A stretch of DNA of 64,000 bases. It comes from Cyanophora paradoxa CCMP329 (Eukaryota; Plantae; Glaucophyta). The translations under genes were made by a program, and so were the position numbers. The DNA is taken from the NCBI GenBank assembly GCA_004431415.1, contig QPMI01000520.1:1-64000 (forward strand), written 5' to 3'. Each line of letters opens with the position of its first letter. Positions within the stretch are counted from its first letter, which is position 1. The notes beneath the pieces were generated by a model. The model was not told where the DNA came from. It was given only the letters and a program-made list of their open reading frames with translations, and did not search any database. This document shows positions 2,196 through 57,725 of the stretch, piece after piece.

Positions 2196-5100
2196 TTAGC
2201 GATCGGACATCATCGGAGGTCCGCGCCGACTCCGCGGCCGAGACCCGGTGACCGTCCGACGGATCCCGGACTCCGCCGGACTCCGGACTCCGGAGTCCCC
2301 CCCCCGGACTCCCCCGTGGCCGGCCGCGGCCGCATGCACGTGCACTGCGCATGCGGCAGCTCGGGAGTCGGAACCAGCTGCAGCTGCAGCCTGCAGGAGG
2401 CCTGTGCAATGCGCAGGCCTGCAGCATGCGCACTGCGGCAGGGCGCCGGCCCGGCCGGGCCGGGGACGGGGGCCGGCTTGCCTTGGCTCTGGCACGGGCG
2501 CGAGCGCGGCCAGCGCGTCAGCTGCAGGTGCCCTTGGCCTCAATATCAATGCGGCCGGGCCCGGGCCGGGGCCCGGCGGGGACTCCATCACGATCGCGAG
2601 CCTCGGAGCTCTCCGATTGCGACGGCCTAGCTCAAGGCCTAAGTCTGGTCGCCCTCGTAGGCGCCGGGGAAGTAGTAGGAGAGGACGGCGCAGTAGCGGT
2701 GCGCCGCCCCATACGCGATGACGCTCCCGTTCACGAACCTGATCATGACTCACTTGGTTAGTGCCATGGTAAACTTGAAAGGGCCCCCGGGGGCCCGGGC
2801 CGGCGGGCGGGGCCCCAGCTGCAGCCTGGATCCGGAGGGCGCACATGCAGGCGAGGCTCCACTTGTTGGCGACGAGGAACCCCCAGGCGGTGGCCCCCTG
2901 CGCGCGGAGGCCGCCCCGGCGCGCTCATGATTAGAGGCGCATGCGCACTCGATCGCGATCGGGGCCCGGTGCCGGGGCGGCCGGCACCATCGGGAGCTCG
3001 AGCTCGAGGGGCGCGTCGAGCTCTGTGGCCGGAGGAGCCTCGGCGTCGGGGTCCGGGCCGCGGGCGGGGCGGCGGGCGGCGGCGCGGAAGTAGAGCCCCG
3101 CGGCGAGCCAGGCGAGGGCGACGACGAGGATCGAGGCGCAGGCCGCGCCGGCAATGGCCGCCGCCTGCTGCTCTGAGAGCACCGCGGGGCCGTAGGGCCA
3201 CAGGAAGCGCGCGGGGCCGTAGCGGCAGGCCGCCAGCCACACGAGGAAGTGCACAGAGGCCAGGATGCTGATGAGGGACTGCGCATGCGCACCGGCGCGC
3301 GGGCGTCGAGATCAGCCCCGGCCGATTGGGGCGGCAAGCTCAAGTACGTATACGTAGACATCTAGATCTGGCGCGCCTGGATGAGGAAGACGGAATAGCC
3401 GGCCTCGGCGGCGAAGGCGCGGGCGAGGGGCAGCTCCTCCTCCAGGTCCCCCCCGGGGCCTAGGCCTGCGGCTGTCGGTTGCTCCCCGTCGACGTCGCGG
3501 TCGCGATCGATCGCGAGGTGCGCGATGCGTGCGCACGATCGCGAGGAGCGGGGGTGGAGGAGGCGCGCTTGGGCCCGGATCGGTGGCGGCCGAGGAGGAG
3601 GGAGGCGATCTCGCGGAGGAGGCGGAGCACGAAGCGGCGCGCGAAGAGGCGCGCCAGCAGCGGGGCCCCCAGCACCGCCACCTCCTGCCCCGGCCCCGCC
3701 CCTCAGATCGAGATCCAGGCCGCTCCGGCGACGACCGGCACATGTACAGGCCGGCCGCGGTGGAGGGGCGGGGCGGACCGTCAGCACGGAGGCGGCGAGG
3801 ACGGCCGGGTCGCCCGCCCGGAACGAGAGCGCGAAACGGAAGCTCTTGTGCATGTACTGCGCATGCACGGGGGCGGGTCAGATGGGATGGGATGGGGTGG
3901 GGTCGGGTGGGGTGGGGCGTCGACCATGAGCCAAGAGGCGACGATGAGGGGGGCCTGGCCGGCGGGGAGGAGGCCGGCGAGGAAGTCGCGGAAGGCGCGC
4001 AGGATGGCGAGCGAGAGGAGGAAGAAGGCCGCGTTGAAGGCCAGGTTGATCACCACCTGCGCCCCGCCACCCCGCCCACCTCGCTTCCGCCCCGCCCCGC
4101 ATCTAGATCTGCAGCGCAGCTGCCCTCCCCCCGCGCCCTCTCGTCGCCTCGGATCCCGAACCTGGGCGGTGGGCTGTGCGGAGTAGGCCGCGAAGAGAGC
4201 GACGTAGCTGCGGAAGCCCGCGCGCGTCACGAGTGCACGGACTGTGGGCGACGGGGCGGGGGCGGGCCGGGGCGGCGGGGCGCACGAGAACTGGAAGTAG
4301 ACGGTGAAGTTCAGCGAGGCGAGGAAGACTCCGAAGACGACCACGAAGCGCAGCGGCCGCTCCGGCGGCCACGCCCCCTCGCCCCGCCCCGCCCCCGGCG
4401 TCCCCGCCCGGCTCACGGAGGCGGAGCCGGCCGCGGCCGCGGAGGCGCCAGCAGGGGCGGGGGTGGGGCCCTCGCTATCGCCGGCGGGGGCGAGGCCGGA
4501 GACGATCGCGAGGGGAGGGGGCTCCAAGGCCCCCGCTCGCCGGGGCCGCCGCCGGGGCCGCCGGCGGCGGCGAGGAGCGCGAAGGCCTGCTGGAGGGCCT
4601 GCGAGGGGGCGGGGGCAGGCGGCGGCGTCAGCGATCGCGCGCCTGCAGCTGGCGGCCCGCACAAGTCGGCGCTGCGGCCATGGCCAGCTGCTGCGCGCAC
4701 CTGGAGGTCCCAGAGGAAGCCCGAGCGGCGCTGCGAGCGGCCGCTCGCGGCGCCGCGGCGCGCGGAGCTCGAGAGGAGCGGGGCCGAGGGCGAGGGGAGG
4801 GCGCGGGGAGGGCGAGGCGCCGCCAAGGTCCGATCGCGATCGCGACGCCGGGCGCGACGGCGAGTCGGCGTCACGGTCGGCGTCGGCGCGCGGCGCGAGC
4901 GCGAGGGGCGTGACCGTGATGCGCACGGGCCCCGCCGCCGGCGTCCGGCCGGCGAGGCGGCCGTCCTCGTCGCCGTGCCCGGGTACGCCGTTGGCGTGCG
5001 GTGCGTGCGAGGGCCGGGGAGAGGGCGCCGCCGGCGGCGTCGCCGGTGCGCCACAGACATCGAGGGGCCCGGGAGCTCGAGCGGGGTGAACTTGCGATCG

Positions 5101-6215: not shown

Positions 6216-6757
6216 CCGCGGCCGCTGCCAGCGGGCTCGAACGCGGCCCGCATGCGCATCGGCCGCGGGCCGGCGCCGGCCAATGCTGCCGCGGCCGCAG
6301 TGCTCCGATCCGCCGCCGGATCGATATCCCGGACCGCGGCCGACGCCAAGTTAGGGTCGAACGTCCGACGCCGCCGCCGTGGGGTCCAAGTTGGGGTCCG
6401 ACGCAGCCTTTAAGGCAACGTGCCAAGTTGGTGTCCGACGTCGACGGTATATACGTAGTACTAGTGGTGCATGGCAACTTCGTGCGCGTGAATATTAATG
6501 CGGGCCGGGAGTCCCGGGGGGCCGGGACGACTACGTCACGGACTCACGGTTACCGGTTAACCCCAAGCCGCAATCATTTTTCGATACCCGGCCTTCGAAT
6601 TCGTTGCATTATGGACGCGCGCTCATACAAAGCGCGCTCTGCTTCTCGTTGCGGGGGGGATCTAGATGGGTGCGGGGGGATGCCTGGGCGCGGGGCGCGG
6701 GGGGCGGCGGGCTTGGGGGACGGGAGGGGAGGGGGCCCCGCAGGGCGCCGGGGGCGG

Positions 6758-52057: not shown

Positions 52058-52721
52058 TCACATGATTTGAAATTCGAATTTGAACGAGAGCCACATACAT
52101 GCTGCTGCGCATGCTGCTTGGCGGGCAGGGCGACCTCAAATCGATTTCTGCCGGGCCCGGCCGCGGGGCGGTGTGCCGGGCTGGGTGCACGTGGGGCAGA
52201 TAGATGAAGAGGAGGCAGGAGCGTCGGGGCGGGGCGGGAGCTAGGTACCGATAGCTGAGCGTGAAAGCGTGAAAGCGTCGCGGCGGCGGCTATCGAGGCT
52301 CCAATGCATGCGCATGCAGACTTAAGCTTGAAAACCTGCTGCGTGTGCGTGTCAACGCGTACGCCTGTCCGCGCGCAGCCGGGGCGCATGCAGCTCGAAG
52401 AGCGCACGACGCTGGCACCTGCATATGCATGCGCAGCTGACAGCTCCGGCGCGGAAAGCTTTTGAGCACGTACGCATGGATGGTCTGAGCGCGCAGGGCG
52501 CTCGGCCGGGCCGAGAGCTCGTGAATAGCACCGCGCGGGGAGCGTGAACGCTGCGTGCGTGCGGCCGGCGTCGACGTCGCAGCATTTCGAATGGGCCAAA
52601 TTGCAACGCGAAAGCTCGAGGTACCTGTACCCGTTTTGATCCTCAAATAAAAAGCGCAACGGCTCTTTCAAGTCCTCAGTCTTTTTGCGATCCTCGCAAC
52701 GAGACTACCCAAAACAACGCT

Positions 52722-54341
52722 ATGGCGTGCGAAATGGATTTCGAAGTGAACGATATTCTCAAGTCTTCTTTCGACGCGCCCCTGACGCGAGTTGCGCCCT
52801 CGCGCTTCGAGCGGAAGGCGGCCGAGAAGAAGGGTCGGACCCCCAGCAAGACCCCGTCTGCGGACCGCTTCATCCCGAATCGTTCGGCGATGGATTTCGA
52901 GGTTTCCCACCTCAACCTGAGCGACCAGGAGAACTGCAACCCGGCCAGCCCGGCCAAGGAAGAGGCGAAGAAGAACCTCGCGGATGCTCTGCTTGATGGT
53001 GCGCCCCGATCGCCTTTTTCAGAGTCTCAAGCGCTTCTAGAATGCGTTTTCGTTGCCGGCGCCGGGCCTCACGCTGATTTCGGAAACCGCGATCCCAGGC
53101 CGCGAGAAGGCGAAGATCCTCGCGTTCAAGACCAAGGCCCCGGCTCCCGAGGCAGGCTACCAGAACAACCTGCGGGTTCTCTACACACAGAACAAGTTGG
53201 AGAAGCTGTGTGAGCCTAAGAAGGCGAACCGCAACATCCCGCAGTGCCCCGGTGCGCGCGATCCCTTCACCCCCACACCCTCGCCCGCGCCTACGGCTGA
53301 AATCGGATCGCAGAGCGCATCCTCGATGCGCCGGAGATGGTTGATGACTACTACCTCAACCTCCTCGACTGGAACGCCGAGAACATGCTTGCGGTGGCCC
53401 TTGGCAAGACGATCTACCTGTGGAACGCCGGCTCGGGCTCCATCACTCAGCTGATGGAGACCTCTCAGCCCGACGACTACGTGACGAGCGTGTCGTGGAT
53501 CCAGCAGGGCAACATCCTTGCCGTCGGCACCAACCAGTGCTCCGTGCAGCTGTGGGACGTGACCAAGCAGAAGCAGCTGCGCGAGATGCGCGGCCACACG
53601 GCCCGCGTCGGCAGCCTTGCGTGGAACAGCCACATCCTCTCGTCCGGCAGCCGCGACTCGAACATCCACAACCACGACGTGCGGATTGCCCAGCACCTCG
53701 TCTCGACCTTCGCCGGCCACCAGCAGGAAATCTGCGGCCTCAAGTGGAGCACCAACGGCACTCAGCTCGCCTCGGGCGGCAACGACAACATCCTCAACAT
53801 TTGGGAGATGTCGCGTCAGCAGCCCCGCTTCACCATGGACCACCACATGGCGGCCGTCAAGGCCCTCGCGTGGTGCCCGTGGCAGCGTGATCTCCTGGCC
53901 TCGGGTGGCGGTACCGCAGACCGCACCATCAAGTTCTGGAACACCACTACAGGCCCGCCCCTTCTCCTCCCGCTTCCTTTTCCTTTTCTTTTCCTGACTC
54001 GGCGGCGTCGCGCAGGCGCGCTCCTGAACTCTGTGGACACGAAGTCCCAGGTTTGCGGCCTGATGTGGAGCCGGAACGATAAGGAGCTCCTCTCGGCGCA
54101 TGGCTTCAGCCAGAACCAGCTCACCGTGTGGAAGTATCCGACGATGACTCGGGTGGCGGAGCTCACGGGCCACACGGCACGCGTGCTCCACCTGGCGATG
54201 TCTCCGGATGGCTCTACGGTCTGCTCGGCGGCCGCCGACGAGACTCTTCGCTTCTGGCGCTGCTTCTCTGCTCCCGAGTCGAAGGCGACTTCGAAGGGGG
54301 CGGACGGCGCCGGTGCGTTCTCTACCCGGTCTATCCGGTAA
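52722..54341 (+). CDS. CDC20: APC/C co-activator CDC20 (Fizzy), 4 exons
   Basis: C-box DRFIPNR, CDK sites (TPSKTPS), Mad2-binding [29 protein letters not shown]40 repeats, C-terminal IR tail (RSIR*). Confidence 0.95.
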
Positions 54342-54492
54342 AGGGGTCCAAACAGGGTGCGCGCGCGCGCGTTGCTATGCCTCTCGCTCGCACACCCCTC
54401 CGGCGCCCCCCGCGCCGCCCCGTGTACTTTACGCGCACTCGCAGTTAAGAAAAGGAGCACTGTCCCTGCCCTTCGTGGCGGGCCAACCCTCC

Positions 54493-54624
54493 GGCGTTTC
54501 TAAACGCCTTCCCCTCTCTTCGTCCCTTGTTAGCATTTACTTATACGGCGTCTCTAGACGCCTCCCTTTCAGCACCTTCGGCGTCTCAAGACGCCTGTCA
54601 GCTGCACAAGCGTTTCTGAACGCT
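54493..54624 (+). promoter_or_regulatory. Array of four 16-nt stem-loops (6-bp stem, 4-nt loop) of histone 3' stem-loop geometry downstream of CDC20
   Basis: GGCGTT-TCTA-AACGCC (54493-54508), GGCGTC-TCTA-GACGCC (54547-54562), GGCGTC-TCAA-GACGCC (54580-54595), AGCGTT-TCTG-AACGCT (54609-54624). All stem differences are compensatory. Confidence 0.75.
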
Positions 54625-54796
54625 CCCTGCCTTCCCTGTGTTCCTTTCCTAGTTAGTAGTTATAGTGGTCTTCGCTTCTGAGAACCTTAGATGCTAATAT
54701 GCAGAGCTTGCGTAGAGATTGTCCCAGACAATGTACAATAACTACAGTGGATTACAACATTCCTTGGAGGAAGAGGGGCGCCGTGGCGGAGCCCGT

Positions 54797-57725
54797 CTAG
54801 GGGTCGGCGCTGTCGCCGTTCTTGAGGCCGGGCCGGTAGGAGAGGCGCTTGGGCTGCCCACGGGAGGGCTCGGTCCCGTGGAGGTAGATGAGGCGGGTGC
54901 GGAAGAGCTCGCCGCTCGGGAGCAGGCGCCACGCCGGCATGCGCCCGTAGCGCCCCGCCCCGCACATCTGCGGGCAGAGGGCGCGTCGGCGGGCGGCGGG
55001 GGGAAGGCGCGGGGTGCGAGGGTGCGCGGGCCTGCATGTCGAGGGCGCCGGGCCAGGCGCGGGGCGAGCCGAGGGCGGCGCGGACGGCGGAGAGCAGGGC
55101 GGAGCCCAGGCGGCGGTACCTGCGGGGCCGGCGGTCAGGGCGGGCGAGGCGGGCGGGCGGGGAGGGGCGGACCAGGCGGCGACGGCGGGGTCGCGGAGCC
55201 ATGCCGAGGGGGTCGCCCGGGCGTCGAGGAGGCGCGCCCAGACGTGCAGGCCCTGCGAAATCGGGCGGCTCGGGCCCCAGCAGGGGCGAGAGGGGAGGAA
55301 GGGAAGGGGCGGGCGGACGGTGGGGCCGGTGAGGACGACGGCGACGGCGCCGTCGGCGGCGCCGTGCTCCGGGGGCGCCGGCGGGGCGGCCCCGGGCTCC
55401 CCTCGCTCAGCTTCCCGCTGTAGGGCGGCAGGCCGGCGATCTGCAAGGGGCGGGGGGGCGGTCAGGCGGGGCGGAGGCGGGGCGGGGCGGGGCGGGGGCC
55501 GGGCCGGGCCTGGGAGTCGGCGGCGAGGATGGCGGCGAGGCGCTCGGAGAGGGCGGCGAGGGCGCGGGGGTCGGCGGCGAGCTGCGGGAGGCCCTCCAGG
55601 CGGTCCAGGTCGAAGAGGAGGTACTCCTGCAGCCACGGCTCCCACCGCGCCGGCAGCAGCCGCTCCGCCGCCCACGGCGCCGCCTCGAAGGCCACGGCCC
55701 GCATGCGGGAGACGGAGAGGAGGCGGGCGGGGAAGGCGGGGCTCGAGGCCGGGGCCCCGGGGCCCTCGGGGTCGCCGGCGGGCGGGGAGTGGAGGAAGAG
55801 GGCCTCCGAGGCGAGCGCGCGGGCGGCCGCCGTCGAGCTCCGCCGCTCCGCCGCCAGCAGCGCCGCCAGCACGCCCCGCCCCGCCCCAGCGCCACCGGCC
55901 GCGTCCGGTACAGGCTCCCGTCCCCCGCGCTCCGCAGGTCCGTCCGCAGGTGCCGCAGGTAGGGCCGCAGCGCCCCGGCGGGGCCACGCAGCCGCCGACG
56001 GGGGGCGGCAGCGCCCGCTCCACGCCGGCCTCGGGCCCCGCCGGCTCGGCCGAGGACGCCGGGTGCGCCGGCGGCTGCCCGAGAGTCCCCTGGGCTTGCG
56101 GGGCCGCCCGCGGCGCGGGGTGGCGAGCCACTCGGCGGCGGCGAAGCGGGTGAGGCGGCCGGCGCGGGCGGCGGCGGAGCGGAGGGCGGGGTCGCCGCCG
56201 GCGCCGCGCCGCATGTAGGCCCGGCGGGAGCTCGTGGGGGACTTGCGCCACCAGTACGTCAGGGGCCTGCGGCGCGGCGCGCTCAGCGCGATTGAACGGG
56301 GCGCGCGGGGTGCGGCGGCACCGGCGCTGGCCGTCCTCGCCCCGGACGGTGCAGACCATGCAGCGCGCCGAGCCGCAGGTCCCGTCCTCCGCCGACGCCC
56401 ACATCACGAGGCTCGGGTGCCGGTCGCCCCGCCGGTGGCCCGCCCGCTGCCCCGCGGCGTCAGCGCGCGCGCCTGGAGCGGGGCGGGGGCGGGCGCGCGT
56501 TGGGGCAGTGGACGGCGACGGAGGTGCGGCTGTCGGGGAAGCGCGGCACGTCGACGACGAGCTCGTCGCTGGCGGGGCCCGAGGCCGCGGCCGCCGGCCA
56601 CGCCAGCGGCGAGCGCGCGCCGTGCCCCAGCAGCGCCGCCGTCAGCTCCTGCAGCTTCCCCGCCGACATGAGCACGTGCCGCCCAAAGCGCCGCCTCCGG
56701 CTCTTGTCCCTCAGCTTCACGCCTGCGACGGCGGCTTCAGCGCTGGGAGGGCCCCCTTCGAGCGAGGCGTGGAGGAGGGCCGCCGCACCGAGGCGGGCGG
56801 CCGTGCGGGTGTCGACCTCCGTCCAGCCGACGACATCGCGGAGCGTGCTCCAGCCGACCTTCGCGATGTAGTAGCTCACGTCCGGCACGCGGTCGACGTA
56901 CGCCGGGCACCTGCAGCCGCCGCGGGGCGTGAGTGCTGGCTGCCGCCTACGGAGCACAGCGGGGGACGCACAGCTCGAAGTACATGAGCGACTCGCCGCC
57001 GTAACCGAGAGCCTCTAGCTCCTCTGCGCGGCTTTCAGAAACGCCGGTGTGGGAGATCGCGCCAGAAAGCTCACCATCCATGCCCGTCACAGGTTGGGCG
57101 CGGGCGGCGACGGTCAGGAGGCTGCCGAGAGGGCGTTAGCTCATACGTCAGCTTGCATAGGGGCAGAACCGGCTTAGACTCACGCGAAGAGGGTCGCCAT
57201 CGCGCCGAAGCCGGACGTCTTGCTCGATGCGGCCAGCAGGTCGCGCAAGCGCTCATGGTCGAGGGCCTCGAACGCCGTCGTCAGATCAATACGCGTTTTT
57301 CGCCCCTCGTCGAAAGCTCGCCGCAGCTCCTCGACTGCCCGCGCAGATCGTGCTTGGAGAGGCGCTGGCGAGTGCGTCGCGGTCTCTCCCCGAAGCCGCG
57401 GCTCGGGCGGGACGCGGATGCTGAACGCCGCGCGGCTGAAGCTGTCGAGCAGCGCGTCGAAGCTGTCCGTGTGCTCCTCCGCGTCCACGCTCGAGCCGTA
57501 CGCCCGCTCGGCCGGCGGGGGCTGCGGAGGCGCATGTAACTGGTCGAATTCCTCGCGGAAATCGCACGTGGGGCCGTCAAAGGCCCGCGGCGTGCGCCTG
57601 ACAGGTCGCTGGCTGACCAAACCCAGCGGACGGAGCCGCGCTGGCGCCAGCGACGCCAGCTGGTGCTTCGGCGCCTGCAGGCGACCGCCGGGCGGTGCCA
57701 GGACGCCCCCCGCGAACGAGGCCAT
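54797..57725 (-). CDS. Uncharacterised protein with a plastid transit-peptide-like N-terminus; internal exons only partly resolved
   Basis: MASFAGGVLAP... Arg/Pro/Ser-rich leader, then globular-looking exons (RIDLTTAFEALDHERLRDLL, CPAYVDRVPDVSYYIAKVGW, WEPWLQEYLLFDLDRL, WRLLPSGELFRTRLIYLHG). Stop TAG at 54799-54797. Could be two genes. Confidence 0.5.

Follow-up and report, generated by a model that had tools for sequence, protein, structure and literature searches.

The 3' stem-loop of histone mRNAs is the textbook case of an RNA element that is restricted to one gene class. Four hairpins of this type lie together behind a gene for the mitotic regulator CDC20 in the glaucophyte Cyanophora paradoxa, on a 64-kb stretch of DNA that was analysed as a whole (hereafter the window), and they raise the question of what a histone signal could be doing on a non-histone mRNA. 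The initial annotation proposed that the CDC20 mRNA had recruited a multimeric, histone-like stem-loop for cell-cycle-coupled processing, translation or decay. The element at this locus is a known one, placed in a conserved setting that has not been described. The features on which this statement depends are collected in Table 1.

Table 1. Features of the CDC20 locus, in window coordinates
Feature	Position	Strand	Basis
CDC20 exon 1, start codon and C-box DRFIP	52722-52998	+	spliced joint 52997/53098 in two RNA runs
CDC20 exon 2, KILAF Mad2-interacting motif	53099-53251	+	RNA-run contigs, frame check
CDC20 exon 3, WD40 propeller, then 63-nt GC-AG intron	53314-53952	+	PF24807, E 2e-90
CDC20 exon 4, IR tail and stop codon	54016-54341	+	product matches P0001
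CDC20 3' UTR, minimal extent	54342-54722	+	inferred from RNA-run contigs
Hairpin 1, GGCGTT-TCTA-AACGCC, U-A closing pair, UCUA loop	54493-54508	+	best histone-type core
Hairpin 2, GGCGTC-TCTA-GACGCC, C-G closing pair, UCUA loop	54547-54562	+	18.5 bits, E 0.05
Hairpin 3, GGCGTC-TCAA-GACGCC, C-G closing pair, UCAA loop	54580-54595	+	10 bits, E 6.5
Hairpin 4, AGCGTT-TCTG-AACGCT, A-U pair 1, U-A closing pair, UCUG loop	54609-54624	+	19.2 bits, E 0.03
Convergent neighbour gene, last exon and 3' UTR	54711-54967	-	run X20 contig 54711-54967

The gene upstream of the hairpins is CDC20. Its four exons, joined to verify the frame, comprise 464 codons, and the product carries a C-box, a KILR-type motif (KILAF), a WD40 propeller that matches the Pfam family WD40_CDC20-Fz and an IR tail. 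EukProt entry tig00020961_g16632.t1 matches this product, and the match to protein P0001 starts at residue 5; CDC20 searches used genomic positions 53337-54338, single exons or P0001 as queries. All three introns are confirmed by contigs from four probable RNA runs. The third (53953-54015) contains no stop codon, and its retention would keep the reading frame. Ahead of the gene, AACGG (an MSA-like core) lies at 52658 and TTCGAA at 52586, and two CHR-like TTTGAA words (52066 and 52079) occur directly past the upstream PIWI-like gene.

RNA contigs 54202-54614 and 54547-54722 span the region from exon 4 to the hairpins, which lie 151-267 nt past the CDC20 stop and inside the 3' UTR, which continues for about 100 nt or more beyond them. 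Because these contigs reveal neither strand nor true ends, this UTR placement is strong but indirect, and a minor isoform is possible despite them. The transcript does not end before 54493, and the view that CDC20 mRNA contains the histone-type hairpin stands. The contigs also traverse the array, so the array is not the mRNA end; a terminal, histone-like 3' end is not supported, given this continuation and the missing ACCA tail and purine-rich element. The convergent gene (54711-56400, minus strand) is expressed and spliced, has a 3' end that overlaps that of CDC20 in RNA contigs and a TGTAA on the minus strand at 54756 within its end, and gave no Pfam match with the two pieces tested. In a run with almost no CDC20 its contig ends at 54711, short of the hairpins, which rules out that they are part of this gene.

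All four 16-mers are present as first described, at 54493, 54547, 54580 and 54609 with spacers of 38, 17 and 13 nt, and three of their four loops fit U-Y-U-N on the plus strand and none on the minus strand. Two details were amended: T(T)CCC, said to follow three copies, lies outside the stem only in copies 1 and 2, the T of copy 4 being its last stem base; and the spacers, said to be unrelated, share short words (by eye) in the case of spacers 2 and 3, so that an old tandem duplication is possible. G-C occupies stem position 2 in 4/4 copies. Loop U1 and U3 together with a U-A closing pair are complete in copies 1 and 4; copy 2 has a C-G closing pair, and copy 3, which in addition has no loop U3, is likely a weak or decayed copy. 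The pattern RGCGTY-N4-RACGCY has four matches in the window against 0.12 expected, but it was derived from its own matches, and the independent test is a covariance model that contains no window sequence. With such a model, built from orthologue hairpins only, copies 1, 4 and 2 rank first in 64 kb; copy 1 reaches 25 bits (E 0.001), compared with 15.5 bits for Histone3, and has a pairing probability of about 0.99. The array is the densest cluster among the 54 perfect 6+4 hairpins of the window, in which no looser copy occurs elsewhere. The hairpin region folds far more stably than shuffled sequence (z -4.4). Copies 2 and 3 pair mutually, rather than as two hairpins, when folding is unrestricted; all four hairpins form when the pairing span is limited to 40 nt, and copy 1 remains stable under all folding conditions used. 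The 6-bp stem and 4-nt loop of RF00032 are thus found in all copies, in copies 2 and 3 only under local folding. The term multimeric holds for this locus and fails for the orthologues, which have a single copy; judged from the sequences compared, the four-copy array is a local, lineage-specific elaboration with two deviant copies.

Conservation in orthologous CDC20 UTRs, which had been proposed as a check, is borne out in many lineages, both in an initial set of 31 flanks and in loci added later. Forty-two CDC20 loci were taken from metagenomes and others were fetched by exact protein; the tested set consisted of 31 non-redundant CDC20 3' flanks (13.2 kb), a sample without animals and SLBP-less lineages. 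A strict rule based on the published hallmarks of histone stem-loops (6 bp, G2-C, U-A closing pair, U-N-U-N loop) gives six sense and no antisense matches in this set, compared with 0.053 in dinucleotide shuffles (Poisson p 3e-11). Since the rule was set after the hairpin list had been viewed, new loci were tested. Among four later-fetched loci, two satisfy the strict rule (0.008 expected, p 3e-5), and with loop base 1 free, a relaxation prompted by Parachlorella, all four do so (0.035 expected, p 6e-8). Across 694 kb of strand-sequence, which comprises the window and all fetched loci minus histone loci, the strict rule has ten matches, all of them sense and behind a CDC20 stop, and none antisense.

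One sense copy each occurs in Parachlorella kessleri (+297), Tetradesmus obliquus (+509), Prymnesium parvum (+87) and Physcomitrium patens (+279), and window copy 1 shares its left arm with the moss copy, GGCGTT-CATA-AGCGCC. Other carriers are prymnesiophyte-like loci, Diacronema lutheri, a locus nearest to Picozoa and unplaced ones, among which related haptophytes are not independent observations. Behind CDC20 of the dictyostelid Cavenderia fasciculata, at +695, is a copy with fully canonical flanks (AAAA 5', ACCCA 3'); it lies past the 600-nt limit of the flank search and is the sole case outside Diaphoretickes, and so counts as a single data point. An unannotated histone gene ahead of this hairpin was ruled out, as no histone ORF lies nearby. 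The hairpin is present in 11 of the 24 CDC20 flanks of at least 500 nt; the Porphyridium CDC20 flank has no such hairpin, and no glaucophyte CDC20 orthologue was among the search matches. Bacterial and archaeal genomes and viral contigs searched for CDC20 gave no usable UTR. These comparisons show a predicted element conserved behind CDC20 in a glaucophyte, green algae, a moss, a Picozoa-like lineage, haptophytes and a dictyostelid.

Several further observations concern these loci. The long CDC20 3' UTR of Cavenderia fasciculata has a possible intron (GTAAGA...TTAG, L078:4236-4390) before its stem-loop at 4564. In Prymnesium parvum the CDC20 hairpin tops a longer stem, TGCCCA ... TGGGCA (L075:4597-4625), and the prymnesiophyte-like loci L004 and L011 have similar stem extensions. 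Locus L063, from Microbacterium assembly QNUV01000058.1, is an insect-like CDC20 contig and evidently contamination.

The same conservation bears on whether the array is a neutral by-product, namely a repeat, a transposon remnant or a palindrome-writing insertion scar. Ten scars of X-revcomp(X)-X type do occur in the intergenic stretch ahead of CDC20 (52058-52721), and local duplication could explain the copy number, but the window has no other copy and the hairpin recurs behind CDC20 in unrelated lineages. The scattered or transposon-derived motif that the initial annotation had named as a possible refutation did not materialize in the window and the fetched loci. Insertion scars were also rejected as the origin of the array itself, inside which no X-revcomp(X)-X scar is found. 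A neutral origin appears largely refuted by cross-lineage conservation, and we regard it as barely credible.

Four copies of inverted half-sites with a 4-bp spacer also look like a DNA element, and a palindrome that a dimeric transcription factor would bind behind a G2/M gene was considered. The spacer is oriented, however: T at loop positions 1 and 3 invariably falls on the sense strand across copies, and antisense matches number zero. The half-sites vary in matched pairs, including G-U pairs in the moss and Cavenderia hairpins; in an alignment of 13 copies (A2), five of the six pairs vary on both sides and G2-C is invariant, while the 100% pairing of these copies proves nothing because they were selected for pairing. 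Identity with a known RNA element argues in the same direction, and a DNA site is highly improbable.

How far the element is a histone stem-loop can be judged from algal histone genes. The suggestion that algal histone hairpins have G at stem position 4 was confirmed in green-algal histone stem-loops of two genomes: the histone genes of Gonium pectorale and Tetradesmus all have GGTGTT-TNT(C/A)-AACACC followed by A, usually ACCA, located 49-126 nt past the stop where measured. In Tetradesmus obliquus the CDC20 hairpin and the H4 stem-loop of the same assemblies are identical over 16 nt (GGTGTT-TCTC-AACACC). The CDC20-hairpin model, which includes this shared core, ranks all four Tetradesmus histone stem-loops at the top. 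Window copies have 9-12 of 16 bases in common with the algal histone consensus. An Rfam scan of the region yields only a sub-threshold Histone3 match (RF00032, 15.5 bits against a cut-off of 34), a score that is uninformative because true algal histone copies (21-28 bits) also fall below the cut-off. CDC20 hairpins and RF00032, the stem-loop bound by SLBP, have in common the 6-bp stem, 4-nt loop and G2-C and, in part of the copies (copies 1 and 4 in this alga), loop U1/U3 and the U-A closing pair; several CDC20 copies have the green-algal histone stem GGTGTT/AACACC. They differ in that the CDC20 copies are in a non-histone mRNA, internal, 38-695 nt past the stop, fourfold in this alga and mostly without an ACCA tail and purine-rich downstream element.

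Histone genes were also sought more widely. None occurs in the 64-kb window, giant-virus histone genes (found with a short, degenerate, approximate H4 bait) have no stem-loop with a 4-nt loop, and an approximate SLBP motif bait has no match in viral contigs, fetched loci or the window. The one match of a double-hairpin pattern in viral contigs is a coding repeat in a phage protein and was rejected as unrelated. An H4 gene on an IMG/VR contig that is probably eukaryotic is followed by the histone stem with a 5-nt loop and an ACCA tail (L060:12940-12956). In Gonium pectorale, an unannotated Lys/Ala-rich H1-like gene has a canonical algal stem-loop (L067:86-1170), and an unannotated H3-side stem-loop lies on the minus strand at 6254 of the same locus.

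The flanks are where CDC20 and histone hairpins part. A follows the stem directly in 9/9 algal histone copies versus 0/15 tabulated CDC20 copies; the moss and dictyostelid copies have A. The A-rich 5' and ACC(C)A 3' flanks of histone ends are absent from the window copies, and only the Cavenderia CDC20 copy is canonical in this respect. The purine fractions after window copies 1-4 are 0.2, 0.3, 0.5 and 0.1; the 20 nt after copies 1, 2 and 4 are purine-poor (0.1-0.3, versus 0.4-0.65 in algal histones), and these three copies have no purine-rich downstream element. The predicted CDC20 hairpin core is of histone type; the processing signal is not. This difference matters for the proposal that the hairpin directs histone-like cleavage, so that at some point in the cycle a CDC20 isoform without poly(A) exists alongside a polyadenylated one. 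The canonical flanks of the Cavenderia copy would suit cleavage, as would the mixed poly(A)+ and poly(A)- isoforms of moss histones. Four tandem copies are, in contrast, ill-suited to one cut, and the flank composition of the window copies and the RNA contigs that pass all four also speak against it, with a minor isoform still compatible with those contigs. Cleavage is an improbable function, at roughly one chance in eight.

We favour, at somewhat better than even confidence, an internal 3' UTR site for an SLBP-family protein that would make the translation or stability of CDC20 mRNA follow the histone mRNA programme. The sole base-specific contact of human SLBP is with G7, which is stem position 2 (PMC10388802), and full affinity of the human protein requires two 5' adenines and one 3' adenine (PMC10388802). 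An SLBP that lacks the SLIP1-binding motif of animals is reported from green and red algae, mosses and many protists (10.64898/2026.10.14.759114), and the histone mRNAs of algae and moss are poly(A)-less yet translated (PMC13130582). From the features that SLBP reads having been kept and those of cleavage and trimming dropped, we infer binding without cleavage. The CDC20 mRNA, presumably polyadenylated, would contain the histone-type stem-loop as an internal element of its 3' UTR, and an SLBP-family protein would recognise this element by G2 and the loop uridines, with no cleavage ensuing. Owing to the absent flank adenines the site would be weaker than histone ends, which four copies could offset. 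Under co-activation, CDC20 mRNA would be stabilised or better translated as long as SLBP is active during S phase and would lose that support upon SLBP removal; alternatively, S-phase repression with later release could act as a brake on premature APC/C activation. Co-activation is favoured over repression and takes up about half of the confidence that we place in an SLBP-family site. Counting against such a site are the absent flank A, the relaxed loop base 1, patchy carriage, the deviant copies 2 and 3 that may mispair, and the lack of non-histone mRNAs among the targets of human SLBP (PMC4604434).

Some of these points would also suit a conserved element of histone-stem-loop origin with another reader (an ERI1/3'hExo-type nuclease, an SLBP paralogue or an unrelated protein) that is independent of histone control. 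CDC20 flanks differ systematically from histone ends, and loop base 1 is relaxed, being other than U in 3/12 orthologues. The algal histone stem occurs with 5-nt and 7-nt loops behind two CDC20 genes (L008:1852-1868 and L027:4018-4036), and second SLBPs with other roles exist in Physarum and animals. Set against this, the kept G2-C, loop U3 and closing U-A are the positions that SLBP uses, though they are also the search rule; the stem is identical to a histone stem of the same genome; and a 5-nt loop is also found behind the H4 gene of L060. Another reader is unlikely, at about one chance in six. As to the age of an SLBP-family site, it is conceivable, at somewhat less than even confidence, that CDC20 is an ancient conserved non-histone SLBP target that predates the Amorphea/Diaphoretickes split, was lost in animals and, by SLBP also timing how the APC/C activator is produced, couples replication to anaphase onset at the RNA level.

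Known systems resemble this case in part. CLIP of SLBP in human cells identified histone targets only and no non-histone mRNA (PMC4604434). Polyadenylated histone mRNAs of Physarum, moss and early fungi likewise have a stem-loop upstream of the poly(A) site but, unlike CDC20, are from histone genes, and no non-histone case of this arrangement was found in the literature searched. The nearest precedent is trypanosome SLBP2 with EIF4E2 and PUF9. In Trypanosoma brucei the EIF4E2-SLBP2-PUF9 complex brings an SLBP-domain protein to non-histone, cell-cycle-regulated, polyadenylated mRNAs (10.1101/2022.05.10.491326), but these are S-phase mRNAs chosen through PUF9, with no stem-loop and no CDC20 described (10.1101/2022.05.10.491326). 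Xenopus oocyte SLBP2, as summarised in PMC8600027, is a paralogue that represses translation when bound to the stem-loop and brings about no processing; it acts on stored histone mRNA only, unlike the CDC20 case. The literature covered, which leaves out most subscription journals, yielded no account of CDC20 carrying a stem-loop of histone type.

The conserved hairpin suggests that anaphase entry and the control of histone supply are connected in an old way that has not been described. If this is true, CDC20 would be the first case to be found of a conserved client of the histone stem-loop outside the histones, and histone supply would be coupled to the APC/C at the mRNA level. Reading by SLBP predicts that the hairpin is lost wherever SLBP is lost, and such a client may partly explain why protists have retained SLBP.
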